Assembly (NCBI GenBank): GCA_937625935.1
Contig: OW569379.1
Coordinates: forward strand, 389,602 to 453,601
DNA: 64,000 nucleotides
Source: Tetramitus jugosus
Lineage: Eukaryota > Protista > Heterolobosea
Direction of reading: 5' to 3'
The notes under the pieces are model-generated. The model searched no databases and had not been told where the DNA came from. It saw only the letters and a program-made list of their open reading frames with translations. The position numbers and the translations under genes are program-made. Positions 25,042 to 64,000 of this stretch are shown one piece after another. How positions within the stretch are numbered: the stretch's first letter is position 1; every line of letters starts with the position of its first letter.

Positions 25042-26580
25042 TCAATCAAATAATACTTTCTTCAAGAACACTGGATTAAGGAAGCGAGTTTTGTAGTTTT
25101 GGTCCATGTGCTGGAATCTAATTTGCTCCTCCCACATGTACTTGTCGACTGCACATCGCTTTGCCCAACGCATTAGCAAGTTACTCAGGACTGGGTACAA
25201 GGTCTTCTGAAGGATAACATTTCCTCCAGTTGTTCCTGGATACTTAAGATCACCAATTGCAATGGTGGTCCATGGCAGTGTGACAGCATCATACACCTTC
25301 TGTTGGAATGATGGACCAAAGTTTGCGTCTTGTTCGACAGGTAGGGAGCACTGACGCAACAGAGTATCCAAGATCAGGCATTGCTCTGAAACAAGTGTCA
25401 TTCCTTGTCCGTAGATTGGACTGAGAGAGCAAACGACATCTCCCAGTGCTACATATCCCTTCATGTTAAACTTTTCAAAATGTTGATAAGTAGATCCCTC
25501 CTTCTTGTAAATCTTCAACTCGTCTTCATCGTTGCATTCAAAAGCATCGAGAATCTGGTTGGTTACCTTTTGGAGAATAGGGTGATCTTCAGGACCTCCA
25601 TAACTCGTTCTTGCTTCATAAACTGTCTTTGGCATCTTTGGATTATTGACACCAATGAGAGAAAGAATAGCCTTTCCATCTTCAATGGCATTGACACCAA
25701 CAGTTTTTACAGATGGATAAGCACCTCTAAACAGCACGTAGTGTTGATTGATACCATTTTGAACAGCCAATGGAGTATCTTTCTTGATCTTAAACTGTGA
25801 GCTAGAGTAAACAACATTGCTTCTGACAACACTTTGGAAGTCTGAGACTTTGTGGCCAGGGTGGAAGTGTCCAATCAATTGACTCAGAGTTTTTGTGCTT
25901 CGACCAGAACAATCAACAACAAATGATCCGAAGAGACTCTCCTCATCCGATGACTCTGATCCGGAACCAGTCTTTACACCAACAACGCGATGCTTATCAC
26001 TGTCATCCATCAACAACTCCTTGACAGTGACACGCGTTCTTACTTCCACATTCTTAATACTGGCCACTCTCTCACGAATATACAATTCGAGTAAATCACG
26101 GGAAAAACTCAACAATGTCAAATTGAATTCTCCTCTCTTGAATTGGGGCATGCTTCCAAACGGAGTCACAGCATTGAACTCTGAGTAATCGACATGCATA
26201 GTTCCTCTGTCAATCATACCTTGAGAGAAACCAGGAAAGATTTTGTCAAGAATGGACCTTCCTCTGTACAATAAACTGTGAATAAAGTGTCTCTGAGGTG
26301 CATTGCTCCTATCATCCAAATACTCTTGTTGTTCAAGCACAATCACCTTCTTAAAATGATGTGAGAGAGTAGCAGCAGAAATGAGACCCCCGAGTGAACC
26401 ACCAATTACAATGGCAGTACTATTCTTGTTTGGACTGTGTTCATTCAGAGTTCCAATCCTTGATTTTTGCAAGTTTTCATGGTACAGAATTTGAGTGAGA
26501 CGTTTGGCAACGTAGAACAATGCAGCAGTCAGAGCAATCACCAACAAGGCAGTTGCATATTGCAGGATTTGAAGTATCAT
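25042..26580 (-). CDS. Membrane-anchored FAD-dependent monooxygenase/oxidoreductase (bacterial LasC-like family)
   Basis: N-terminal TM, then VIGGSLGG FAD-binding motif, PQxxxxH motif, VVDCSGR and LGDVVCSLSPIYGQGMT. Confidence 0.8.
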   Translation of the reverse strand: MILQILQYATALLVIALTAALFYVAKRLTQILYHENLQKSRIGTLNEHSPNKNSTAIVIGGSLGGLISAATLSHHFKKVIVLEQQEYLDDRSNAPQRHFIHSLLYRGRSILDKIFPGFSQGMIDRGTMHVDYSEFNAVTPFGSMPQFKRGEFNLTLLSFSRDLLELYIRERVASIKNVEVRTRVTVKELLMDDSDKHRVVGVKTGSGSESSDEESLFGSFVVDCSGRSTKTLSQLIGHFHPGHKVSDFQSVVRSNVVYSSSQFKIKKDTPLAVQNGINQHYVLFRGAYPSVKTVGVNAIEDGKAILSLIGVNNPKMPKTVYEARTSYGGPEDHPILQKVTNQILDAFECNDEDELKIYKKEGSTYQHFEKFNMKGYVALGDVVCSLSPIYGQGMTLVSEQCLILDTLLRQCSLPVEQDANFGPSFQQKVYDAVTLPWTTIAIGDLKYPGTTGGNVILQKTLYPVLSNLLMRWAKRCAVDKYMWEEQIRFQHMDQNYKTRFLNPVFLKKVLFD

Positions 26581-27242
26581 GATGATGATAGATATTGAAA
26601 GCTTTCAAATTGATAATGATGATACGATCGTAGTATGGATAAAACAACAAGTTTTCTTCTTCTTCTTCTTGTCAAGTGTTTTGTGAGAGAGAAAAAGCGA
26701 CAAGTGCGATAGAGTGTGTTCAAACAAAAAGTTGGAGAATAAAAGTTGAAAATGAACGAATGAATTTTGCTATGAATGGTAGAATGCGATAGGCAGCTGA
26801 CTTGTGATGTCGGTTCTCTCTTATGGACTTTGGTTTTAGGTTAAAAACAGAATACTGCCAAGAATGTTGAGGATGCTTTGGATGGGTGAGTGAAGGATGA
26901 TGACAATCACGTGATAGAGTGAGTTGATTGTTAGTATTTGGGAAGTTTTTGTTTACTGGACCTTGCTTTTATTGTTGTCTTTTTGACGGGCGACGGCGAA
27001 AAATTAATGTCCGTTAAGGAAGCTTGACCTAGTGTGTCTCCGTTCGCCAGATTCGATTTGATTGATTTCACCTATCATTCCATAAAAGTAGGTAACTACG
27101 GAGTAATTCCCAAAAAGGATTGATGTTTGGCATGGGGAGTCAGCGAATTTTCGACTTCCAGCATTGTGTTGCCCAGTCCGAGACAAAACAACAAAGTAAC
27201 GATAATCACGAAAGACCACACAAACAAACAAACAATATCAAG

Positions 27243-30200
27243 ATGCAACAAGGTATCGAAAGAGTATGTCACACTTTGAACTTTTGTTCCACCCCTTACT
27301 GTGGCCCCGTAAGGGCCAGATCTATTTTTAGTGTTCGCTCACACAAACTTTTCTTCCTTCAACCAACATGAAATGTCTGTCTCTTTCATGGAATGGACAA
27401 TCATCATCATCATCATCACAACTACAGATACCACTAACAATCGAACAAAAAGGAATATGGTTCGAATGCGAAAAGAATCCAACATCATCGGCATATACTG
27501 TACAATGGGCCTATCACATACAAGGTAAACTAGACATTCAATTATTGGAACAAAGTTTGAACAGTGTCATTCATCGACACGATGCCATGAGAACAAGGTT
27601 CGGAAAGGAGAGTGGTGGCGTGCCTTACACGTACGTTGAAAAAGAACATTCCAATCAAATTTTGAGTGTTCAATTTTTGAGAGATCACAATGAAATTCAG
27701 GAGGTGATCAGGTCAGAGTGCGATCATTGCTTTGATTTGTACAAGGAGCGCCTGTATCGCTTTACGGTGATTATCGCGGGAAAAGATGATTTTTATTTTT
27801 TGGTGGTGAAGCATCATTTGATTTATGATGGTGCAAGTGCCTATTTGTTTGCCAAGGAGTTGTCCGAGGTGTATCAGGGCAAAACAATGGAGAAACCTGC
27901 GTCAAATATTCATGATTGGTACAGGTATCAAGAATCAATGCAAGAGCTAGTGGAAAAAAGCAAGCCATTCTGGGATCAGTATATGCTAGGGTCATCTCCC
28001 GTTGATCTCCATTGCTATTCCAATGTTGTGCCTGATCGATCAGTGAGCGTTGTGAATCGCTCCTTGCCTGTCGCCTTGTCGAGCCAGGTCAAATCGTTTA
28101 GCAGAGCGCACAAGAGCACGGATTTTAGAACTCTGATGACTGCATTTCAAATTTTGCTTCACAGGTATACACATTCGGATGACATTACCATCATGTATCC
28201 AAAGAACATGAGACCTAGAAGCTTACCGGATTTGATGGGTCTTCACATGTCTGTCCAGCCATGTAGAGTCAAATTCTCATCGGACACCTCATTTTTGAAC
28301 ATTATCGAACAGAACAATGAATCGTTTGATCAATTTAAGGATATGGCACCATTTAACATTGCAAAGCTCTCCTCTGATGATACAGCAGTGTTATTTGGCA
28401 GATCCATGTACATATTTGATACCCTTCAATTCGGAGAGGGAATCACTGTGAATAGAATGGATATCGCAAGAGCGGCATCTGTATCAACGTTTTGCTTGCA
28501 AATGGAACCTGTAGGCGACTCGTATGAACTCTTTTTCGAGTATAATAATAACAAGTTTGAGCTATCGTATGTTGAAGAGATGGCTGTACACTATTTGAAC
28601 ATTGTTAAGGCAATGATTGAAACTCCAGATGCACTGGTAAACTCGTTCAACTTTTTGTCGGAACCAGAGATGACACGGTTGGTATTCGATTGGAACGACA
28701 CTGTAACTCCTTTACCAAATAAGAATGTGATAGAGATATTTGAGGACAATGTAGCTCGGTATCCTGATCACACGGCAATCAAGTACCTCGATGAACAATA
28801 TACGTATCGACAGGTAAATGAAAGAGCAAACAAGTTGGCCCGGTATTTGGTGTCCGTGGGCGTATCGATTGAAGATTGCGTCGCTGTGAGTCTCGAAAGA
28901 ACACCTGATCTACTCATTTCTTTCCTGGCCGTGTTAAAGGCTGGTGGTGCCTATGTTCCTCTCGATATCAACTACCCTCAAAGCAGAGTTGATTATATTG
29001 TACAGGATTGTAATGCAAAAGCAATTATTGCTCACTCAAATTTTGAAGGGAAACTGAGTAACCATAAGATTGCCAAGTTGTATATTGACAGATCAAGTGA
29101 ATATGAACACTTCTCCAGTGATGAAAACTTGGGAGTTGTTGTGTCAAAGAACTCTTTACTAAATGTCATTTATACCTCAGGAACAAGTGGAAAGCCAAAG
29201 GGTTGTATGGTTCTTCATAGAGGTGTCGTCAGATTAGTCAAGAATACCAACTGCTTCTCCATTGAGCCATCTCACGTTGTCGGTCAGATTTGTAATCACT
29301 CCTTCGATGCTTCCTCCTTGGAAATATACATGGCTCTTTTGAATGCAGCGACCTTGGTAATGATTCCAACAAAGACTGTGCTTCATGCACAAAAATTCAA
29401 GCAGAATATGAAACGGTATGGTGTGACTCATCTCGTGTTCAGCACAGGTGTGTTTGATCACTTGGTTACTATGGATCCAACTGTCTTCGAAGGTTTAGAC
29501 ACGGTCATCGCTGGTGGAGATAAGATGAAACCAGCAATCAGCAACAGAGTATTATCTCTTGAAGCAACTAGACCTGCTCACTTGCTCAATGTTTACGGTC
29601 CAACCGAGAATTCAACAAGTACATCCTTTTTCGAAGTTGAGATCGCTGAGCCAGACTATGTCATTCCAATTGGTAAGAGCATCTCCAACACTCAGTGCTA
29701 CATTCTAGATAGAAATAGAAAATTGGTACCTGTTGGAGTCAACGGATTTTTGCACACTGGAGGTGAAGGTGTTGCTCGAGGTTATCTGAACAATCCAGAA
29801 CAGACTGAATCTCGGTTCTACGAACATGAGTTCGAAAATGGTTTTAAGACACGGCTATACAACACTGGTGATTTGGCTCGGTATCTTCCTGATGGTAATA
29901 TTGAGTTCTTGGGAAGAAATGACAAGCAAATCAAACTAAGAGGATACCGTATCGAACTTGCAGAGATTGAGGCTGAAATTTTGAAACATCCAGAAGTTTT
30001 CGAAGCAGTTGTCGAACCAGTAGATCAAGGAACAAACAAGAAGATTGTGGCATATGTTAAGGCACCAATGAACGTCAAGAGAAAGTTGTCTAATTCACTG
30101 CAATCGACTCTACCAAGTTATATGATGCCGAGCGAGATTGTTATGCTTGATGATTTCCCTCTCAATGGTAACGGTAAGGTAGATATTGAAAAGTTGAAGA

Positions 30201-33200
30201 CTCTTCATACACCAAGACCAAGTGTTGATGAAAGAGTTGTGCCGACGAATGGTGTTCAGAGAGACATTGAGAAGATTTGGGCAACAGTTTTGAGCGTTGA
30301 ATCCGTGAATGTGAATGCCAACTTTTTCGATCTAGGAGGAAACTCACTGTTGCTAGCTCAGTTGAGATCCATGCTGTCTGATTATTCCAAGAAGGAGATC
30401 TCCTTGGTAGATCTGTACAAGTATACAACAATCGAACAAATGGCTGAATATTTATGTCCAGAAGATAGTCAGGCAACTGATTCAATCCACATAAGTGAAG
30501 ATCAGAAATCTCAACCATCAGAAGAGTCACAAGTAGCAACGGATGCCATATCTAACAATGATATTGCTATCATTGGTATTGCCGGTAGATTCCCTGGTTC
30601 AACAGACATGGATACTTTCTGGGATAACATTTGCAATGGTAGAGGAGCAGTCTCCATCAAATCCAAGGATGAGTTGATTGGCTTAGTGGACGAGACTCTC
30701 ATAAAGAATCCTAATTTCATTCCTTCTCGTCCTTTATTGGATGATATCAAGGGATTTGATGCTGGATTCTTCAATGTGGGTGTTGGTGAGGCCGCTTTAT
30801 CTGACCCTCAACACAGAATTCTGATGGAGTGTGTCTGGGAGGCTTTGGAGTCATCTGGTCACACGCCATCTAACTATGATGGACGTATTGGACTATTTGC
30901 TGGTTGTGGTTTGAACTACTATTCTCCAGCTAGTCATCTCCATAAGGATGGAAATGCAGCAGAGAGGTATCAATCAACCATTCAGAACGAAGCTGATTTC
31001 TTGTGCTCAAAGATTGCATACAAGCTGAATCTGAAGGGACCTGCTGTAACTGTCCAAACTGCGTGCTCAACCTCCTTAGTTGCTGTACACATGGGCTGTA
31101 ACTCAATTATTGTCTCAGATTGTGACATGGCTATTGCTGGTGGTGTGAGTCTCGGATCATTGGATGCTCTAGGATACATCTATGAAGAAGGAATGATCTA
31201 TTCAAAGGATGGACTCGTCCGACCATTCGACAAGAACGCATGTGGTGTTGTTGCTGGACAAGGAGCTGCTGTTGTAGTGATGAAATCGCTCACGAAAGCA
31301 ATCAAGGACAGAAACACAATCTTTGCTGTCATCAAGGGATCAGCAATTAACAATGATGGAGGAGCAAACAAGGTAGGATTCACTGCGCCAAGTGAAGAAG
31401 GTATTTCTCAAGTTATCATGCAAGCACAAAGAAGAGGAAATGTCGACCCAAGCACCGTATCGTACATTGAAACACACGGAACTGCAACTGCACTCGGAGA
31501 TCAAATTGAGTTTGCTGGTCTACAAAGAGTTTTCTCAAAGTGCCAACAAACTCCATTCTGTGCTCTGTCATCAGTCAAGTCAATGTTGGGTCATCTAGAC
31601 ACAGCGTCCGGAGCAACCGGACTTATTACTGCTGCTCTTGCATTGAAGAACAAACAACTACCACCGATTGCAAACTTCTCTGAGCCACATCCAAAGTTCC
31701 ATATGGAATCTAGTCCGTTCTATGTCAATTCCACTAGTAAGGAATGGAAACACTCTCCTCAGCTACCACGTAGAGCTGGTGTGAACTCGATGGGTATTGG
31801 TGGTACCAATGCCCATGTCGTCCTGGAAGAATTCATATCAGAAACGAGAACTACAGAGTCCAGACCATGGCAAATCGTATCTCTCTCTGCGAAGACCCCA
31901 GCAGCACTTGAAGTTGCTACAAGCAACATGATGCACTACTTGAAGAAACATCCTGAAAATATGGCCGATGCCGCATACACCCTGCATGTTGGACGTGACA
32001 CCTATCAACACAAAAGATTTGTTGTTTGTGACACTGCACAGAGTGCTATTGATCAATTGAGCAACCCTGCTTCCTATTCAACACTACAACAGAAGAAGAT
32101 CATTTTCATGTTCCCTGGTTCTGGTAATCAATATGTGAACATGTCCAAGGGCATCTACGACTCTGAACCTCTATTCAGACAAGTAATCGATGAATGCTTG
32201 GTGATTATCAATCGAATCATTCTCACTAGTGAGACATCCTCTCTTGAAACCTTGTCATTCAAGGATCTTTTTGAGAACAGAGTGAATCAGATCGACTTGA
32301 TGCAGCCATTGATATTCTGTGTCGAATATGCACTTGCCAAATTGATTATGAGCTGGGGAATCATGCCATCTTCAATGATTGGTCACAGTCTTGGAGAGTA
32401 CACTGCTGCTTGTCTCGCTGGTGTTTTCACCTTGGAAGATGCCTTGACGATCATCATGGCCAGAGGTAGTTTGGCAAAATCCATTACAACGAAGGGATGC
32501 ATGTTAGCCGTCAGTGTACCAGAAGACAAGATTGCGCCCTATATCCGTGCTGACGTTAACCTTGCAGCCGTCAATGGTCCTAACCAATGTGTGCTCTCTG
32601 GTAGCGTAGAGAGCATTGACCAAGTGTGTAAGGAACTGAGTGAGAGCTCGGGTACACCAATTCAGTTCAAACGATTGAGAACTGAAACTGGATATCACTC
32701 ATACTTGTTTGACTCTGTCCTTGATCAATTCTCTAGAGTATTCGATGGAATTGTGATGCAACAGCCTCAAATTCCAATCATTTCATCAATGAATGGGACT
32801 TGGATGCAACAAGGAGAGGCCACTTCATCAGACTATTGGGTGCGTCACTTAAGAGACACCGTTCACTTCTCCAAGGGTGTATTCACCATTCTCTCCAGTC
32901 CTCTCTATGAAAGTGCAATTCTGCTCGAAGTTGGACCAAGCAGCACACTGTCATCACTTGCTAAAACACAAGTGACAAACAGCGAAAACCATGTCATTGT
33001 ACCACTCATGAGAAGAGAGACTGAAAAGTTTGAGGATATGCAACACCTTCTCAACGGTATTGGAAGACTGTGGGCTTGCAGTGGAGTACGTTCACCAGTC
33101 AACTGGAACAAATTCTATTCACAGGAACAAAGACTCAGAATTCCTTTGCCAACCTATCCGTTCCAACGTCAGCAACATTGGATCCATTCAGCCAAATCTC

Positions 33201-34333
33201 CTCCTATGATCCAAAACAACCGAAGAAGAACTGAACCTTTGGTGTCACTTGGAGAAGCACCAGTTGTTGCCTCACCACGTGAGGATGGATATTCGAGTGA
33301 AGTTCATCACACAACAGCAACCAACAGCATTGTCGGTGGCCACAATGATTTACAGCGTAGAATCATTGCACATTGGCAACAGACATTGGGTCTTCAAAAT
33401 GTCACCTTGGAAACTGACTTTTTCGATGCTGGAGGAGATTCTCTGTCCTCTATTGGCATGCTCTCAAAATTGGGAGCTGAATTGAGAATGGACTTGATGC
33501 CATCTTTGCTCATTGAGCATCGAACAGTTTCAAAGTTGGTCAAGTACATTGAAGGAGCCATGAGATCTTCTGCTGTGCCAACAACACCAACAAATGTCAT
33601 CGAAGCTACAAGCAATAGTGCAACAACGGCAACAAACAGTACTGTGACGAATCACTTGGTCTTGATACAGAAAGGAAAACCAGGCAAAACACCAATTGTT
33701 CTTGTTCATGCCATTGCAGGTCACATATTTGAGTATGTCGCCTTTGCAAAACACCTAGGTGATGATCAACCTCTCTACGCTTTCCAAGCATCATCTGGTC
33801 ATGGTAATCCTCCTTTTGATAATATCAACGATATGGCTCGTGTTTATGTGAATGAGCTTGTGTTAAAATTGAAAGAAAGGAAGTTTGTGCTTGGAGGTCA
33901 CTCATTTGGTGGAATTGTAGCCCTGGAGATGTCACATCAAATGCAACTAAGGGGTTATCACGTGCCTCTTTTGGTCTTACTCGATAGTCCGATTCTTAAA
34001 AGTGTACCAAAGTCACTGAAAAAAGATGCGATCGTCAAGTACATGTCAAAGTATCATGCGGGATACACATTAGATGATCAGCAGATCGAATCTTGGTTGT
34101 CGCATCAGAAAGCGATGACGGATTACGCACCCGCCAACATTTACGAAGGAACTGTTTTGTTTGTGAAAGCAGAAGTCAAAATTGAGGAGCTGCCCGTTTC
34201 ACCCGAGATTCCTTGGCACGAGATAACAGCGACAATGCATCTTTACACTGTCGCTGGTGACCATGCCACAATGCTCCGTGGTGACAATGTCGAACAAATC
34301 GTGCGCATCCTGAGCGAACACATGCCTCAATAA
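27243..34333 (+). CDS. Hybrid NRPS-PKS: C-A-PCP-KS-AT-ACP-TE
   Basis: C HHLIYDG (~27812). A: YTSGTSGKPKG (29171), SFDAS, YGPTE, YNTGDL, NGKVD. PCP GGNSL (~30335). KS VQTACSTS (Cys 31064), ETHGT, GHLD. AT GHSLG (32381). ACP GGDSL (~33431). TE GHSFG and GDH. Main exon ORF is 27368-34333; probable 5' micro-exon 27243-27263. Confidence 0.95.
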
Positions 34334-34957: not shown

Positions 34958-37090
34958 ATGGCCTCACCAAAGACACAAAGTGCTAAACAACTGACTCATG
35001 AAAGCACCAAGGACCTAGAGCTTGACTCTCTCCACGAAGACAGTAGCTTAAGCATCGGAGAAAAGGAAACGAAAGAAACCAATACCATCAAGGATTTGTT
35101 CAACAGATACAATCTCATTGTTATCCTGTTGGCCATCATTTTGATTGCTATTGGTTTAGCTACAGGTCTCATTGCCTTCTTTACCCTGCAGGCACGAGAC
35201 AAGAGAACAGCCAAAAAAATTCTGAGAGAATATTCTCAGACACAAGCAGATTACTTGCAAAAAGAGTTGGACAAGAGTGTGTTGATTGCAATTAACATCA
35301 AGGGACTGTTCGAAGTGATGCCTCTCGTTCAATATGCCAATTTTGAAGCGTTCATCAACACGACTGAAGTCCGCTCGAGAAATCCTGGTATCAACACGAT
35401 TGCTTATTGTCCACAGGTCAAGAAGGCAGATATCACCACGTTTGAGAATGAGATTCGGACTTCATTGGGTGGAAACTATGAAAATTTTACCATTTTTGAC
35501 ATGGATGCCTCCTTTACACATATTCCATTGCCTGACATGACACTGTACACACCATTGTTGTTCAGTGATCCATTCATTAGTTTGTTGATTGGTTATGATA
35601 TTGGTGCCTCTGTTTCCTTCAAGTTGGATGCCATCAACAGAGCAAGAGCCAGTCAAAAGAGTGCTGCTACATCAAAGACTTACTTTACTGTGCCTGGATT
35701 GGGAGAAAGACCTGTTTGTGAAATGTATTGTCCAGTGTTGCAAAATGGAGAGATTAAGGGTTTCTCTGGTGTTGCCTTCTTCATTTCTACCATGGTGGAT
35801 GCAGCCTTCTCGGACTATGTGCTCAGTCAAGTCGAAGTGTACTTGATGGATGATGACGTTGCAGATGTCAACACTGATGCTCATTACTTGTATAGTACAA
35901 CGGGCGAATTGAATTATTTGGCTGCTAGAAAGGCAATCAATAAGGCATCGTTCAGCGTGTCTCAAACCGTGTTCATGGCTGATAGACAGTGGAAGGCTGT
36001 TTTCCTACCAACAAACGGCTTTTTGAGAAGCAATGAGGGATATGAAAAGTGGATTGCACTGTTTGTTCCACTCGTTGTCTGTGTCATTCTCTCATTTGTG
36101 TTGGCTCTGTTCGTCAAGGGTTTCGAATACTCGGCCAAGATGAGAGAGATGGCCAAGGAGCGTGTGGTCATTTTGGAAACAGCGCAACATAAGCTTCAAA
36201 ACTTGTTGGACTCGATCGCAACTCAGGAGAAGAAGACACGTACCATTATCAACACTTTGACTGATGCTGTGATTGTGACTGATGAGCACGGTAAGCTCCT
36301 CAAGATTAACAACAGTTTTGAGAAGATGTTTGGTATGAACGAAGTCGAAATTCATAACAATACTCTGCAAAACATTTTTGTTGAAGCTGACAATAGAATC
36401 CTATTGGTGGACAATCCAATCGGTACTGACACTCAGGCAAAGAATCAATTTGGAAAGACATTCCCTGTTCAAGTGTTCTCTCAGAGCTTGGTCAAGCAAC
36501 CTGGTGCAGAAGAAGCCTATGTGTTGTCTGTGAGAAACATGTCTGATAAGGAGCAAATGCTTAGAGATCTTGCCAGTCAAAAGGACAGAATTAAGAACTT
36601 GGAAGAGAAGGCTGAGTTTGACAGTGAGTTTGCCGTCGAGTCATTCAGAAAGGACTTGCTCGAATTCTGCAAGCGTGAAGTCAACTCTGAAAATGTTGAA
36701 TTCCTCATTGCATTGCTCGAATATAAGAGTTTGCCATTCAACATGCGTGCTGAGAGAAAGATGAACATTTTCAACAAGTTCCTCAAGATTGGTGCACAGA
36801 ATCAATTGAACATCTCCAAGGAAATTTCAGACAGAATTGAACACAAGATTAAGAAGTCCAAGACTGCCGATACTGACTTGTTCGAGCATGTTGAAGACTT
36901 GGTGAAGGCAATGATCATTCAAGACATTTATCCAAGATTCAAGAAGTACCAAGAGAGTATCAGAAGAACATCTTCTGAAATTTCCTCATCCGATGCAGCA
37001 TCCAACGAGAGAATATCAACAGACAAGGATAGAGGAGAGCAACCAGCTTCACCTTCTTCCCCATCGCATCCCAACTTCTTGAACAAGTAA
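34958..37090 (+). CDS. TM-CHASE-TM-PAS-RGS sensory protein
   Basis: Two TMs flank a CHASE-like region (PGINTIAYCPQV, LIGYD). PAS: DAVIVTDEHGKLLKINNSFEKMFG. RGS: EFCKREVNSENVEFL, QLNIS, DIYPRF. Confidence 0.8.
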   Translation: MASPKTQSAKQLTHESTKDLELDSLHEDSSLSIGEKETKETNTIKDLFNRYNLIVILLAIILIAIGLATGLIAFFTLQARDKRTAKKILREYSQTQADYLQKELDKSVLIAINIKGLFEVMPLVQYANFEAFINTTEVRSRNPGINTIAYCPQVKKADITTFENEIRTSLGGNYENFTIFDMDASFTHIPLPDMTLYTPLLFSDPFISLLIGYDIGASVSFKLDAINRARASQKSAATSKTYFTVPGLGERPVCEMYCPVLQNGEIKGFSGVAFFISTMVDAAFSDYVLSQVEVYLMDDDVADVNTDAHYLYSTTGELNYLAARKAINKASFSVSQTVFMADRQWKAVFLPTNGFLRSNEGYEKWIALFVPLVVCVILSFVLALFVKGFEYSAKMREMAKERVVILETAQHKLQNLLDSIATQEKKTRTIINTLTDAVIVTDEHGKLLKINNSFEKMFGMNEVEIHNNTLQNIFVEADNRILLVDNPIGTDTQAKNQFGKTFPVQVFSQSLVKQPGAEEAYVLSVRNMSDKEQMLRDLASQKDRIKNLEEKAEFDSEFAVESFRKDLLEFCKREVNSENVEFLIALLEYKSLPFNMRAERKMNIFNKFLKIGAQNQLNISKEISDRIEHKIKKSKTADTDLFEHVEDLVKAMIIQDIYPRFKKYQESIRRTSSEISSSDAASNERISTDKDRGEQPASPSSPSHPNFLNK

Positions 37091-41823: not shown

Positions 41824-44385
41824 TTACATTTCATCCAAAAGAGGAGCTCTGACACCCACAGACGACTTATTGATATCCATTTGAAACCTTTCAGAGGATT
41901 TGTATCTTGAAAGCGTATCGGTACTCATCAGAAGTTCTAATTCTTGCTTCACTCTCTCAAACAGAGTGTGGTCGATGGTGACTGTATCATTCTTTTGAAT
42001 CTTATCCAGCACTTCCATTTTCATTGATTCATTGATATTCACGGTGTACAACCCATTGAGAGAAAAGTATTTGTCATACAACTCTTTGGCGAACCTCATG
42101 CGTTCATGTCTGTCAATTATCGTCCTATACTCTTGAATCTTGTTCCAAATTGAAATATTCTCCTGAGATCTTTCAGCAATGCAGAACTGTTCGAATGATT
42201 CCCTCAACACTTCATCTTGTAAGATGTCTCCCATTTGGAGCGACTGAACAACGAGTTTGGTTTGCTTTTGGAGGTCTAAAGCCTTCTGTAAGTACGCCTC
42301 AGCAACTCCATCTCTTTCTGATGACTCTTGACAAACTTTCTCAAATTCTTTGACTGAATCACCGTAGCGTCCATGCAAGAACAGATCAAGGGCAGTGTTG
42401 AAAGTTTCCTTCTGTGCTAACTTTCCGGTATCCTCGGGATGCAACAACTCGTATACTTCCATACTATCTTGATACTTGTCGGTGGATGATGCTTTAAAGG
42501 AGGCAACAGATCCTATTCTTCTCACTTGATATCTTTTCGCATTCTTGTAGCAAGCAGAGATTACATTCTTGGTCGTTAGAGTTCTGGCTTGCAATTTGTT
42601 CGTCAATCGAGTGAGAGCTGTCTTGATATGAGAATGAGAAGGACTGAGAATCGCACCATCAATTCTTTCATTTTCTCCCAATGTGCCAATCAGTGCTGAA
42701 TCTGAATGAATTCTTGTTCCGAGTCGAATGTCGACATATGGTTGATCTTCATTGAACATGTTGATTGTTTCTTGCATTTCCAAACTTGCTTTCACTGCTT
42801 TCTCAGCACTCTTAAAGAGGGCAGTGAATCTCTCACCTTGATATGATTGAATGAATCCATCATACTTTCGAATCAATGGTCCCACAAATGTCAGATATTG
42901 GTTCAACAAACTGAACAACTCTTCATCATTCATTAGCTGAGACACTGCTGCAAAGTCTAATACTTCAACCTCCATTAGAGTTAGTTTATCTTTCTTGATG
43001 TGCATGCCGAGTTTGATATCAGTGATACGTTTGCAACCAATCATATGAAGGAAGCCCTTTGGAACAAACTTTGCAATCGCCAATTCTTGGATTCGGTTCA
43101 TTCTTCTCCATGGAGAAATAATGGTACTGGAAAGAACAACTGCTGTGACAATTGAGAGAACTGCAAACAGGAAGGCAATGATGCAAAAGACAACAATTTG
43201 CACAATCGAGTTTCTTCCTTGACTCAACGCACTCTCAAACATGGAGTCGACTATAGATCCCTCAATTATCCTTAGTTCTGCAACAAGACGAGCTAAAACA
43301 TTGCTATACAATTTCGCATCAGCTGGATTGAAAGAAAGAGAGCCGTTGTTGTTCGTCACAGCATATTCAATGAGCATGTTCACTTCAGTCAAATTGTAAT
43401 ACCTCAGTGGATTTGTCAAGGATCCCTGATCCAAAAAGAATTCTTCAAGTGTCCTTTTGTTCTGAGTGGTCAAGAACAACATCTGATAGATTTCAAACTC
43501 TTTTTTGAAAGACAACCAAGCAGTGAATCGCTGAACGCCAATAGATGCGCCAAACAATAAATTCATGGCTCCAGGTTTCATCTTCTCCGTTGCTTCAATG
43601 AGGCGAGCAACAAAGAGATACGTAGTTCCTTTGTAACCTAAGTCAGCCACCTCTATCACCTTTGTCTGCAACAATAGAGCAGAATGAATAGCTTTTTGAT
43701 AATAACGGAAGCTATCGCTGGAACTGATTGTTCTAGACTGAACTTCTTTTCGATTTTGATCAGTGAGACCTTCCAAATATTTCAAGTCATCAAAGTAGAG
43801 ATGGAGTTGTTCATACTTATTTCCTAGATACTCGTGAAGTTGAGACTGCTCAGTATACATTTCACTCTGTTTCTTTTGTGTGTTACCCATCGCTGCACGC
43901 AGGAGCAAAGTTACATTCCCAAAATTGGCATCTGTCACGTTCGTAGACAAGTACACAGTGGAGTACGTTCTCTCATCTTGCAGAGCCATAATATACTTGG
44001 ACATGTGATAAACAAACGTATTGGTTTCTTTGTGTATGATTGAACGATGGGTCGATGTTCCAGCATTGGTCAACGTCAGAATGACAAACAATGTCATTCC
44101 CACAATGCTCACCAAGCACATGACAATCAACTTGATTGGCAGCGGTGTGCGTTCCATGAGACCAATAATACCCTTGCGATGCAATTGTAGAAGATTGTCA
44201 GACAGGGTGTGCTCAGTTGAATCATTATGGAAGTCAGTGTCCGTGGTTCCTGCATCCAATTGGCTGGTAGGCACACCATCCATTCCCACGCTGTTCTGCT
44301 GAACATGGGAGTGTGTACCACTGTCAGCATATGCAAGATCCTGCATCTCAATATCATCGAGATGATTGGGTACCAGAATACTCAT
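41824..44385 (-). CDS. TM-NIT-like-TM-degenerate class III cyclase-RGS protein
   Basis: NIT-like ALQDERTYSTVYL; KFVPKGFL/LG linker; cyclase-like fold (LNQYL..VGPLIRKYDGFI, GTLGENER); RGS FCIAERSQENISIW, TVNI, TLSRY. Likely ATG 44385 (ORF open to 44538). Confidence 0.8.
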   Translation of the reverse strand: MSILVPNHLDDIEMQDLAYADSGTHSHVQQNSVGMDGVPTSQLDAGTTDTDFHNDSTEHTLSDNLLQLHRKGIIGLMERTPLPIKLIVMCLVSIVGMTLFVILTLTNAGTSTHRSIIHKETNTFVYHMSKYIMALQDERTYSTVYLSTNVTDANFGNVTLLLRAAMGNTQKKQSEMYTEQSQLHEYLGNKYEQLHLYFDDLKYLEGLTDQNRKEVQSRTISSSDSFRYYQKAIHSALLLQTKVIEVADLGYKGTTYLFVARLIEATEKMKPGAMNLLFGASIGVQRFTAWLSFKKEFEIYQMLFLTTQNKRTLEEFFLDQGSLTNPLRYYNLTEVNMLIEYAVTNNNGSLSFNPADAKLYSNVLARLVAELRIIEGSIVDSMFESALSQGRNSIVQIVVFCIIAFLFAVLSIVTAVVLSSTIISPWRRMNRIQELAIAKFVPKGFLHMIGCKRITDIKLGMHIKKDKLTLMEVEVLDFAAVSQLMNDEELFSLLNQYLTFVGPLIRKYDGFIQSYQGERFTALFKSAEKAVKASLEMQETINMFNEDQPYVDIRLGTRIHSDSALIGTLGENERIDGAILSPSHSHIKTALTRLTNKLQARTLTTKNVISACYKNAKRYQVRRIGSVASFKASSTDKYQDSMEVYELLHPEDTGKLAQKETFNTALDLFLHGRYGDSVKEFEKVCQESSERDGVAEAYLQKALDLQKQTKLVVQSLQMGDILQDEVLRESFEQFCIAERSQENISIWNKIQEYRTIIDRHERMRFAKELYDKYFSLNGLYTVNINESMKMEVLDKIQKNDTVTIDHTLFERVKQELELLMSTDTLSRYKSSERFQMDINKSSVGVRAPLLDEM

Positions 44386-45112
44386 CTTGTTTGTTCGTTT
44401 TGGTGGTGGACGTTCTTTACCAAGATCCGGTAACGAATACCTGTTCATGACATGTGAACCATGACAACCCTCGTCAGAAGAACAGGGGACGCAGAAATTG
44501 TCCACATGCAGTAATCTCATTATTATCCGACATACCAAAATCAGAAAGCACCCGGAATTTTACAGGAAAAGTTGGCGCCCAGATGCTCAATGAAAAGTGT
44601 GAAGTGGAACCCATACCATGAAGATAAAAGTTTGATAGATCCATCTGGACCTTGACCACTTGGAGCTCACAGTATCGCGTCTCTAGAATGATGAATGGCA
44701 TAACTACAGACTACAGGTCACATTCGAAGAAAGGACAGCATAATCAGACTCTTGACATCTTGTTTTGATAGAACACCAAACCTCCCAACAAACGAAAGGC
44801 AATGAAATGAGAAGTGAGAGTATTCCATCGTGGAGAGATTTCTGTGCTGTGTGTTGAAGAATACAAGCCCGAAGTTACTTGACCATCCATTGTTTCAGCA
44901 CTGTTTTACCCATGAATAGGACAGCCATCATTGAACCATTCAAGTTCTCAAATATCATAAGGCAACGACCAATGCGATCTCTTGGTTTTCTGAGATAGAG
45001 GAGGATGTGTTGTTAGTGAACAGAGAAATTCACTATTTATTGTCTAGCTGGATACAACAACGAATGAAAGTTGAATGCATCTGTCGCTAGGCTATATCTT
45101 TTGTTTCATTGC

Positions 45113-46182: not shown

Positions 46183-47226
46183 ATGGTTGTTCCATTGTTA
46201 GCATTAGGAGGGGCTATGTACTATGGCTACAAAAAATACGTGAGTAGAATTTCTTCTTTTTGCAATACTATTTAGTGAATCTTACTAGTAACTTACACTT
46301 TGGTATTTAGCAATCATGGGTGGCTCCAAAGAGAATAATTGTTTTTGGGTTCTCCGCTTCTGATAAGGTTTGTATGACTTTTTTGCGAATTTTAATTCTC
46401 ATGAATCATGTACTCACTACATTACATATTTAAGACCTCATTGATCAACACCCTGACTGGGAATAATGACGCAGTGGGAAACTATCAGGCCATCGGAACT
46501 TCTTTCGAAAATAAGTGTGTCACTTATCGCAGAAAGAATCAAGATTATCAACTCTGGGATACCCCTGGTCTCAATGATTTTGCAGCACTAGATTTGCCTC
46601 CAGCAGCTATTTTGAATTCACTTACAGATTTGATGAAGAATACATCTGAGGGTGTCAATTTGTTGATTTTTGTGGTAAAAGTATCAGAACTGAAAAAGCC
46701 TGAAATCAGAAATCAATATGACTTGATTGTTAACCAACTGACTCAGACTAGGATACCAGTGATATTAGTGGTGACCAACTGTGAGCAAAACATTCAAAGT
46801 GAAGGAACCTTCGAAGAACAGTGCCAGTCCATGTTCGATAGTTGTAACTCTATCGAATTGGATGGAATGAAATTTTGTGCTCGAGTTGGTACTTGCTTTG
46901 CTTCTTCTGACAAAGGAAAGTATGGGAAGCTTAAAAATCAATCTGCAAACAAGGTTTGGACTTTGATTGAGGAGAGGGCAAATGATTCTTATATTCCTTA
47001 CTTCTCTGGTTTTTCGGGCACTGATGGAATTCTCTGGAAGTGGTACAACTCTGCTGTAAAATCAACTGGGGCTAACCTCAATCAAAGAGAATGTACAGAG
47101 TTAATTACTCTCTTTGAACGTCTTGGATTTAATTCTGAACAAGCCAAAAGGAGTGCAGAGCAACTCGCCTCTCCTAGAATAAAAAATCATTCTCAACCAA
47201 ATTCCGACAAGGAATTCAAAAAGTAG
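46183..47226 (+). CDS. P-loop GTPase-like protein (AIG1/MMR_HSR1-like), 3 exons, degenerate P-loop
   Basis: Exons 46183-46239, 46311-46367, 46435-47226 give RIIVFGFSASDK|TSLINTLTG, G3 LWDTPG, GVNLLIFVV and PVILVVTNCE. Confidence 0.7.
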
Positions 47227-48390
47227 TTGGATTTAAAAATCATATTCACACCCATTCAATTATCACTCTATCATGATTATATGATCCAGAGATTCATGGA
47301 GCAGAATCCCAATCACTTCAGTAGTTGTTTAACTCCGGATTGTAACATGATTTTTGCGTATGATGGAAGTTGTGAAGAAGATCACGATTGCTTCTGTCCC
47401 AAATGTAAAAAACGGTATTGTCTTAAATGTCAATGTGACTACCATGTGAACATTACATGTCAACAATATCAACAGTGGAAACGAGAGAATACAACAACAG
47501 ATGATAAATTCCAGGAATACATTGAAAAATCAGGAAGTAAGCAATGCCCTCAATGTAAACGATATATTCAGAAGAGTCTAGGTTGTGACCATATGACTTG
47601 TAAATGTGGATGTCAATTTTGCTATAGATGTGGTGGTAGTTATCCATGTAGGAACCGATCGTGTGGAGGATTAATAACGACACAATTAATGGGTGGAATA
47701 AGGAGAATGGGAGGTGTAGATATATTGGAGGGAATTAGAGAGCAGTTTAGAAGATGGGAACAAAATATGTCGCTCGTTACAAATCGTAATACTTCAACTG
47801 GAGCTACTAATAGAGAGAAAGGTGACGCAAATACTTCAAGTGTTCAACAACGAGCACGAATGCCTATTTCTACCGCAGAATCATCTTCAACAATTCCAAT
47901 CCCAGTTTCATCAGAATCGTCGTTATTTTCAAGGTGGTGGCCTTCACCAGAAACATTCTTGGTGCCGCGAGCTGCGCCACAAAGTACATCACAAGCTACG
48001 GAAGCGACAGCATCCTCATCAATAGCACCACGTACAAGACGATCGGTACGGCAAGCAACTTCGAGGAACACAACGACAAGCAGTAGTAATGCTGATACAT
48101 CTTCGACGCTAACACCAAGCTCACTGTTATCGGAATCGTTGTTATCTACAATGTGGTGGCCTTCACCTGAAACGTTCTTGGCACCGAGGGAAGCGATTAC
48201 AAGTGTGAATAGAAGAAGAGGTGAGAGTAGTGGTCGTAATACCACTTCCAATTCTTCTATTATTACTGTAGCCGATACTGGTATAAGAGCAGACAGAGGT
48301 GGAAGTAACAGTGTTACAGAGCTTAGCAGTCGTAGTACCAGTGGTGGAGGTAATAATGATGTTGCTCCTGCTCTTATTATTTTGGATTAA
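47227..48390 (+). CDS. IBR-RING2 (C-terminal half of RBR E3 ligase) with S/T-rich tail; RING1 absent
   Basis: IBR CLTPDC...CPKC...CLKC..YH...C and RING2 CPQC...GCDHMTC.CGCQFCYRC. Begins directly after the upstream gene's TAG; first ATG at 47281. Confidence 0.7.
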   Translation: MDLKIIFTPIQLSLYHDYMIQRFMEQNPNHFSSCLTPDCNMIFAYDGSCEEDHDCFCPKCKKRYCLKCQCDYHVNITCQQYQQWKRENTTTDDKFQEYIEKSGSKQCPQCKRYIQKSLGCDHMTCKCGCQFCYRCGGSYPCRNRSCGGLITTQLMGGIRRMGGVDILEGIREQFRRWEQNMSLVTNRNTSTGATNREKGDANTSSVQQRARMPISTAESSSTIPIPVSSESSLFSRWWPSPETFLVPRAAPQSTSQATEATASSSIAPRTRRSVRQATSRNTTTSSSNADTSSTLTPSSLLSESLLSTMWWPSPETFLAPREAITSVNRRRGESSGRNTTSNSSIITVADTGIRADRGGSNSVTELSSRSTSGGGNNDVAPALIILD

Positions 48391-62675: not shown

Positions 62676-64000
62676 TTGGGTTTGGGTTTGGGTTTGGGTT
62701 TGGGTTTGGGTTTGGGTTTGGGTTTGGGTTTGGGTTTGGGTTTGGGTTTGGGTTTGGGTTTGGGTTTGGGTTTGGGTTTGGGTTTGGGTTTGGGTTTGGG
62801 TTTGGGTTTGGGTTTGGGTTTGGGTTTGGGTTTGGGTTTGGGTTTGGGTTTGGGTTTGGGTTTGGGTTTGGGTTTGGGTTTGGGTTTGGGTTTGGGTTTG
62901 GGTTTGGGTTTGGGTTTGGGTTTGGGTTTGGGTTTGGGTTTGGGTTTGGGTTTGGGTTTGGGTTTGGGTTTGGGTTTGGGTTTGGGTTTGGGTTTGGGTT
63001 TGGGTTTGGGTTTGGGTTTGGGTTTGGGTTTGGGTTTGGGTTTGGGTTTGGGTTTGGGTTTGGGTTTGGGTTTGGGTTTGGGTTTGGGTTTGGGTTTGGG
63101 TTTGGGTTTGGGTTTGGGTTTGGGTTTGGGTTTGGGTTTGGGTTTGGGTTTGGGTTTGGGTTTGGGTTTGGGTTTGGGTTTGGGTTTGGGTTTGGGTTTG
63201 GGTTTGGGTTTGGGTTTGGGTTTGGGTTTGGGTTTGGGTTTGGGTTTGGGTTTGGGTTTGGGTTTGGGTTTGGGTTTGGGTTTGGGTTTGGGTTTGGGTT
63301 TGGGTTTGGGTTTGGGTTTGGGTTTGGGTTTGGGTTTGGGTTTGGGTTTGGGTTTGGGTTTGGGTTTGGGTTTGGGTTTGGGTTTGGGTTTGGGTTTGGG
63401 TTTGGGTTTGGGTTTGGGTTTGGGTTTGGGTTTGGGTTTGGGTTTGGGTTTGGGTTTGGGTTTGGGTTTGGGTTTGGGTTTGGGTTTGGGTTTGGGTTTG
63501 GGTTTGGGTTTGGGTTTGGGTTTGGGTTTGGGTTTGGGTTTGGGTTTGGGTTTGGGTTTGGGTTTGGGTTTGGGTTTGGGTTGGGTTGGTGGGTTTGGGG
63601 TTGGGGTGGGTTGGGTTTGGGTTTGGGTTTGGGGGTGGGGTTGGGTTTGGGTTTGGGTTGTGGGGTTTGGGGTTTGGGTTTGGGTTGTGGGGTTTGGGTT
63701 TGGGGTTGGGGGTTGGGTTTGGGTTTGGGTTGGGGTTTGGGTTGGGGGGTTTGGGGTTTGGGGTTGGGTTGGGTTTGGGGTTGGGTTTGGGGTTTGGGGT
63801 TGGGTTTGGGGTGGGGGGGGTTTGGGGGTTGGGGTTGGGGTTGGGTTGTGGGGGGTGGGTTGGGTGTGTGGGGGGGGGGTTGGGGGTGGGGGTGGTTGGG
63901 GTGGGGGTGTGGGTTTGGGTTGGGGGTTGGGGGGGGGGGGGGGTGGGGGTGGGGTGTGGGGTGGTGGGGTGTGGGGTTGGGGTGTTGGGTTTGGGTGTTG
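62676..64000 (+). repeat. Telomere (TTTGGG)n
   Basis: Perfect TTTGGG array to ~63580, then degenerate G-rich sequence to the end of the window; G-strand runs toward the end. Confidence 0.97.

Follow-up and report, generated by a model that had tools for sequence, protein, structure and literature searches.

A transcribed, bacterial-type NRPS-PKS hybrid gene in the heterolobosean amoeba Tetramitus jugosus and its predicted product

How does a complete bacterial-style peptide-polyketide assembly line come to stand in the chromosome of a soil amoeba, is it a working gene there, and what would it make? These questions are raised by a 64-kb stretch of DNA (hereafter, the window) that forms the right end of a chromosome, number 36, in Tetramitus jugosus (Heterolobosea). 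The natural products of bacterivorous protists beyond the dictyostelids are little studied, and one coding sequence of 6.9 kb from a harmless soil amoeba kept in culture, with expression in soil and a prediction that involves two substrates, makes the question of which small molecules amoebae use against bacteria, or among them, directly testable. Here, we find that the gene is real, transcribed, intact, domesticated and kept under selection, and we give about even chances to the reading that it encodes a domesticated bacterial NRPS-PKS that caps one hydrophobic amino acid, adds one malonate and releases the product through its thioesterase (TE).

The assembly of T. jugosus CCAP 1588/3C was built from HiFi reads and Hi-C and comprises 26,350,207 bases at QV 56.7 (PMC11106597). 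The synthase gene lies ~28 kb from a (TTTGGG)n telomere that starts at window position 62676, and the flanking genes (RecQ, mitochondrial carrier, MOV10, RGS and WD40) are eukaryotic, as a preliminary description of the locus had said of both the flanks and the telomere-bearing contig. The features of the locus, in window positions, are as follows.

25042..26580, minus strand: flavin monooxygenase of the Lsd18/MonCI epoxidase family (E 2e-20) with a hydrophobic N-terminus, head-to-head with the synthase
26581..27242, no strand: intergenic region between the divergent start codons, 662 bp; spanned by DNA contigs, but by RNA contigs only in part
27243..27263, plus strand: exon 1, 7 codons from the start ATG; sequence and splice joint 27263->27428 in soil RNA contig X9
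27264..27427, plus strand: spliceosomal intron, 164 nt, GTATGT...CTACAG, phase 0
27428..34333, plus strand: exon 2, 2301 codons plus stop
27428..28681, plus strand: condensation (C) domain, HHxxxDG intact; divergent lineage of its own beside DCL/Dual domains
28739..30178, plus strand: adenylation (A) domain, pocket code DALVIGVTS(K)
30263..30454, plus strand: peptidyl carrier domain (PCP), GGNS serine
30557..31678, plus strand: ketosynthase (KS), Cys-His-His intact; hybrid (post-NRPS) type
32102..33040, plus strand: acyltransferase (AT), GHS and Arg intact; atypical TGYH motif
33341..33553, plus strand: acyl carrier domain (ACP), GGDS serine; limits approximate
33692..34315, plus strand: TE, Ser-Asp-His intact

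The stop-free frame at 27368-34333 (+) holds 2321 codons, or 2321 aa counted from the first in-frame ATG; homology searches were queried with a single reading frame or with exon 2. The splice joint 27263->27428 is seen in one soil metatranscriptome contig, with a short side of 25 letters, and the joined exons translate to a protein of 2308 aa, which replaces the ~2340-aa polypeptide of the preliminary description; the gene start that it had placed at 27243 agrees with the sequence and with the spliced exon 1. A 68-nt intron with its acceptor at 27331, giving 2340 aa, is compatible with the sequence, but the soil RNA uses acceptor 27427 instead. Under the spliced model, the poly-Ser stretch seen in the mechanical ORF falls within the intron.

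In a single frame, Pfam places the domains C, A, PCP, KS and AT, then another carrier domain and the TE, in this order, and it finds no KR, DH, ER, MT, E or R domain in the synthase, confirming the complete C-A-PCP-KS-AT-ACP-TE layout free of reductive domains described before. All of the motifs listed at that time are present (HHLIYDG, both carrier serines, VQTACSTS, two KS histidines, GHSLGE, GHSFG and GDH), and the catalytic residues are intact throughout: HHLIYDG in C, Ser in both carriers, Cys-His-His in KS, Ser/Arg/His in AT and Ser-Asp-His in TE. These residues are invariant between the synthase and its orthologue P0035, despite an identity of 39-41%.

Is this a living gene of the amoeba? 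Twenty public runs from 15 studies contain the stretch or part of it, and eight soil metatranscriptomes hold more than half of its sampled words. Contigs placed on 25900-31850 come from three runs, of which two are RNA libraries and the third, unlabelled but of the same organism, has an RNA-like pattern; they cover the coding sequence and leave gaps in the intergenic region. RNA contigs thus cover the gene, one of them in spliced form. In groundwater DNA, contigs that overlap by 30 nt run from the 5' neighbour gene into the synthase, which excludes a chimera on that side; for the 3' junction the support is the assembly alone. Among the strain differences listed for the coding part, a partial list, 21 of 28 are synonymous, against 22% expected for random changes. 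Codon use (r = 0.93) and GC match those of host genes, in keeping, together with splicing, with the earlier view of a real nuclear gene. A genome search found the Sfp/AASDHPPT-type PPTase (a protein with AASDHPPT_N plus ACPS) on chr18, in addition to an AcpS-type enzyme on chr47, and we infer that the chr18 enzyme is available to prime the carriers of the synthase. Two findings that would have spoken against the earlier view, a lack of transcription and a lack of a PPTase, are thus excluded.

The domain trees are unrooted and built from search hits, and thus display affinity rather than donor; in the KS tree, the synthase falls into a clade supported at 98/99 with four uncharacterised, stand-alone bacterial hybrids (P0322, P0324, P0062 and P0065), which agrees with the post-NRPS hybrid type assigned to it previously. 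The AT groups with the same four at 91, and the TE, without P0065, at 89. The KS is 50-52% identical to the KSs of bacterial hybrids versus 36% to the own-genome KS (rank 400), 36% being the upper limit for own-genome KS domains, and for every domain the best non-orthologue matches listed are bacterial. P0322 and P0324 share the one-module layout of T. jugosus, and P0324 is identical in layout and similar in length; P0062 and P0065 are two-module hybrids that, with P0322 and P0324, are the nearest in KS, AT and TE among the matches listed. The four differ from the amoeba gene in having other A-domain codes, degenerate leading C motifs and no intron. Several bacterial relatives have the two-module layout C-A-T-C-A-T-KS-AT-T-TE, that is, the layout of the coralinone synthetase CorA plus a leading C. 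On viral contigs there was no relative of the KS or the monooxygenase, and the one locus that came up in a metagenome scan, at 24% identity, is unrelated.

The orthologue, P0035, was called with 2267 aa; its identity to the T. jugosus synthase is 39% over 99% of the length, and it lies on a gene-dense eukaryotic contig. Its host should be another heterolobosean, because two genes close to P0035, for a probable radial-spoke protein (69% identity) and for Utp11 (54%), have T. jugosus counterparts that stand in the same order on chr17. The two synthases are sisters in the C (99), A (100), TE (98) and KS (95/94) trees, and are not resolved as sisters in the AT tree. A phase-0 GT..AG intron is predicted in the P0035 gene just before the same IPLT motif, matching the T. 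jugosus position. The horizontal transfer proposed earlier is supported as to its bacterial origin, and is old, since the orthologue with the same predicted intron position is found in another heterolobosean. No orthologue from Naegleria, Acrasis or Willaertia appears among the TE-region search matches listed; the C-region search missed even the known orthologue P0035, and the whole-protein and KS-AT searches were dominated by multi-module bacterial proteins, so that lower-scoring orthologues may escape listing. The second heterolobosean and P0062, which sits in a gammaproteobacterial gene order, come from the same JGI sample (3300062347), and the host of P0062 is possibly an amoeba-associated bacterium.

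The simplest reading of these comparisons is one old transfer of a whole bacterial stand-alone gene into an ancestral heterolobosean, where the gene would have acquired an intron and the codon usage of its host and been retained by selection. An old, vertically inherited eukaryotic gene, or one put together in the amoeba out of PKS and NRPS pieces that it already had, seems very unlikely to us. An AU test does not reject grouping of the KS with the long-branched Steely-like KS of the same genome (p = 0.62), the constrained tree even outscored the free tree, and protist sampling is thin; against this stand the much closer KS identity to bacterial hybrids, the long branch of the own-genome KS itself, the bacterial best matches in every domain and the existence of the full layout in bacterial genes. 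No characterised orthologue was found either. A bacterial-type sequence in a bacterivore also calls to mind contamination, a chimeric assembly or a dead relic, the more so with a 3' junction that comes from the assembly, but splicing, RNA coverage, 5' DNA linkage in an unrelated sample, host-like GC and codon use, the purifying selection seen in the excess of synonymous changes, and a HiFi and Hi-C assembly lead us to reject these readings, the chimera on the 5' side, as extremely improbable.

What would the enzyme make? The A domain retains the Asp needed to bind an alpha-amino acid. Alignment to LgrA gives it the code DALVIGVTS(K), and that of P0035 is DALAMGATS(K). The closest bacterial A domains carry DAFWIGGTF, DALWLGGTF and DAFFLGVTF/Y, which we take to be Val and Ile codes. 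The synthase A domain sits among these Val/Ile-type domains, but two positions of its pocket are filled by smaller residues, which would make for a roomier hydrophobic pocket; we infer specificity for a hydrophobic residue from a code that lacks a matching verified entry and from codes that are presumably those of Val and Ile. Among solved structures the AT is nearest to ZmaA and CurL, and the orthologue's IAFH motif, in place of TGYH, points to a malonyl substrate.

After priming of both carriers by the chr18 PPTase, the A domain would load a hydrophobic amino acid, the C domain would cap its amine with an acyl group from acyl-CoA or a carrier-bound donor, and the KS would add one malonyl unit. 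There is no KR, so the extended chain would remain a 4-amino-3-oxo thioester. The collinear product proposed before, one amino acid plus one unreduced ketide, is thus supported by the domain order. Release may take either of two courses: hydrolysis by the TE to an N-acyl 4-amino-3-oxo acid, followed by decarboxylation to an N-acyl amino methyl ketone, and closure by the TE to an N-acyl tetramic acid are both tentative proposals, the second being held slightly less likely than the first.

The role of the C domain is central to this prediction. Its predicted fold is complete (pLDDT 90), and it scores ~80 bits against solved elongating domains versus 25-31 bits against solved starter domains. In a tree of 131 C domains, with motif-based subtype labels and motif sorting being unreliable by itself, the protist pair forms a long branch in a group supported at 98 with DCL and Dual domains, apart from the starters. 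The preliminary description had expected the N-terminal C domain to acylate the amino acid, as a starter domain would; the sequence tree and the scores against solved structures place the domain outside the starter group. Fold comparison is nearly tied between subtypes (Z 38.9 versus 37.6), and structures thus do not separate them. HHxxYDG is retained in both protist C domains, though these share just 33% identity. The domain falls outside the starter group by sequence, but with the motif kept in both protists and the fold scores nearly tied, N-capping appears the most likely role, and a peptide donor and a scaffold function are its rivals.

If the C domain instead elongates, it may receive an aminoacyl or peptidyl chain in trans, either from an A-T-C-A-T NRPS encoded on chr46 or from the partner chain of a dimer, to give a dipeptide methyl ketone that could cyclise to a 5-methylpyrazinone, as in coralinone, with a signal role. 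The grouping of the C domain with elongating domains speaks for this, as do the two-module bacterial relatives and the chr46 NRPS itself, which holds the one further NRPS C domain that a search of the genome brought up and ends in a carrier without a TE. That enzyme, however, is unlinked to the synthase, its domains are 22-32% identical to those of the hybrid and do not group with the hybrid A domain, and its own C motif is degenerate (HGIVIDS), the C domain being probably inactive; we regard a donor in trans as rather unlikely. Less likely still, the C domain may serve as a scaffold only, leaving a free 4-amino-3-oxo thioester that closes to a 5-alkyl tetramic acid or, after hydrolysis and decarboxylation, yields an aminoketone that dimerises to an alkylpyrazine. 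The C domain is indeed the fastest-evolving large domain of the synthase, and in the bacterial one-module P0322 and P0324 the leading C motif is degenerate and lacks its glycine; the conservation of HHxxYDG in both protists argues the other way, and MucE does not accept an unacylated substrate (PMC10161427). Capping of a single amino acid thus remains our preferred reading.

How does the synthase compare with known systems? The reutericyclin-type precedent invoked earlier is retained, and CorA is added as the closest tested precedent for the KS-AT-ACP-TE half (PMC10979478). CorA, the coralinone synthetase of Corallococcus exiguus, has the layout A-T-C-A-T-KS-AT-ACP-TE; its KS-AT-ACP-TE part was shown to install the methyl group, and release of a beta-keto acid followed by decarboxylation was proposed (PMC10979478). 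The two enzymes are alike in being one polypeptide with a cis-AT, a single unreduced malonyl extension after a hydrophobic residue and a terminal TE, and CorA likewise needs no tailoring. Compared by layout, CorA carries a pair of A-T modules and lacks a leading C, whereas the T. jugosus synthase has one module and a leading C, and only one A domain versus the two amino-acid modules of cor-like 5-alkylpyrazinone systems. It shares with these systems a KS-AT-ACP-TE half that is free of reductive domains. No peptidase family, and hence no corB-type peptidase, occurs among the neighbours scanned. In the mutanocyclin and reutericyclin systems (MucD/MucE and RtcN/RtcK), C-A-PCP is likewise followed by KS-ACP-TE, with one amino acid and one malonate, and the MucE TE closes the lactam (PMC10161427). 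These systems, however, are split and AT-less, their C domain belongs to the starter clade (MucD-C is a starter), and MucABC are required for 3-acetylation (PMC10161427); the T. jugosus synthase is fused, with a cis-AT and a C domain outside the starter group by sequence, and no mucABC-type acetylation genes are found among its neighbours.

TAS1, the tenuazonic acid synthetase, is a C-A-PCP-KS enzyme without AT, ACP and TE, in which the KS cyclises the chain and does not extend it. It resembles the T. jugosus synthase as an NRPS-first hybrid in a eukaryotic host (its route is given in PMC10161427), and ascomycetes have bacterially derived hybrids in which the NRPS comes first (PMC6854747). The gene is less exceptional in a eukaryote than the preliminary description held, as the domain order C, A, carrier, KS, AT, carrier, release domain has already been described (PMC7732545) for hybrids of Gigaspora margarita and G. 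rosea. The Gigaspora hybrids likewise have a eukaryotic host, a bacterial-type KS and no known product, and differ in being fungal and present in five or six copies (PMC7732545). No Gigaspora protein (including KAF0502938.1) was among our search matches, and the fungal and heterolobosean genes are probably independent acquisitions. For Discoba we found no report of such a hybrid, nor any description of the T. jugosus gene in the literature; the main texts of the Acrasis, Naegleria and Willaertia papers searched describe none, and the Naegleria and Willaertia papers list PKS genes without products (PMC9928731, PMC7285305). What we describe is thus a known domain order in a new lineage, a well-supported working gene with a predicted product. 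The gene also documents the transfer of a whole megasynthase from bacteria, domesticated and retained.

The adjacent flavin monooxygenase (25042-26580), one of two in the genome, is covered by RNA contigs of the same runs as the synthase. It is a possible tailoring partner that may oxidise the product; the link is not conserved, with no Lsd18-like monooxygenase seen within ~9 kb of P0035 and none beside the bacterial hybrids. A flavoprotein beside the bacterial P0065, considered as a counterpart, is not homologous to the amoeba enzyme. No sigma-70 sites above chance occur in 26581..27242. Peptide epoxyketone systems of the eponemycin type carry a C-methyltransferase within their PKS, and their clusters encode an acyl-CoA-dehydrogenase-like enzyme; the T. 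jugosus synthase differs from them in having no MT domain and, as its neighbour, an Lsd18-type monooxygenase. That heteroloboseans keep a bacterial NRPS-PKS with an undescribed C subtype, which together with its epoxidase-like neighbour makes a new soil signal or weapon, is a possibility that we hold to be rather unlikely; if true, we know of no earlier peptide-polyketide natural product from Discoba. A role of the product as a secreted signal or an antibacterial in soil would be a guess from the precedents. Three of the four bacterial hybrids adjoin two-component or kinase genes. More widely, stand-alone bacterial hybrids (L039, L040, L048, L049 and L051, the last being the P0062 locus) repeatedly have genes for a kinase-GAF protein, a histidine kinase or a response regulator as neighbours, and tailoring genes are few or lacking, which, considered without a control for gene density, would fit a signalling product.

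Further along the window, downstream of the synthase, lie a CHASE-PAS-RGS gene (34958-37090, plus strand) and a NIT-RGS gene (41824-44538, minus strand), both sensor fusions. Several RGS genes were seen in the genome, the CHASE-PAS-RGS gene among them, and its position beside the synthase is treated as chance. At 46408-48390 (plus strand), a GTPase ORF is followed in the same frame by an IBR-domain ORF, with a single stop codon between them.

Finally, the 26-Mb genome carries a secondary-metabolism set that is sizeable for an amoeba. The chr46 NRPS without a release domain is subtelomeric (L016:4575-9338, G000:C46). A Steely-like fusion has the order FAAL-ACP-KS-AT-MT-ACP-type III PKS (G000:C45, L014:693-8764), and a fully reducing type I PKS/FAS with the layout KS-AT-DH-ER-KR-ACP-TE (G000:C28, L019:1346-9538) resembles the one reported from Willaertia. 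A set of four loci (L044:2296-5508, L045:2450-5963, L046:2303-6427 and L047:2892-6062) includes, at L044, L046 and L047, two A-T-R enzymes and one A-T-R-R enzyme, and within the set an A-domain protein stands head-to-head with a cytochrome b5-YqcI/YcgG fusion. Possible free-standing acyltransferases are encoded at L008, L009 and L010, by three stand-alone proteins whose matches to Condensation or acyltransferase domains are weak.
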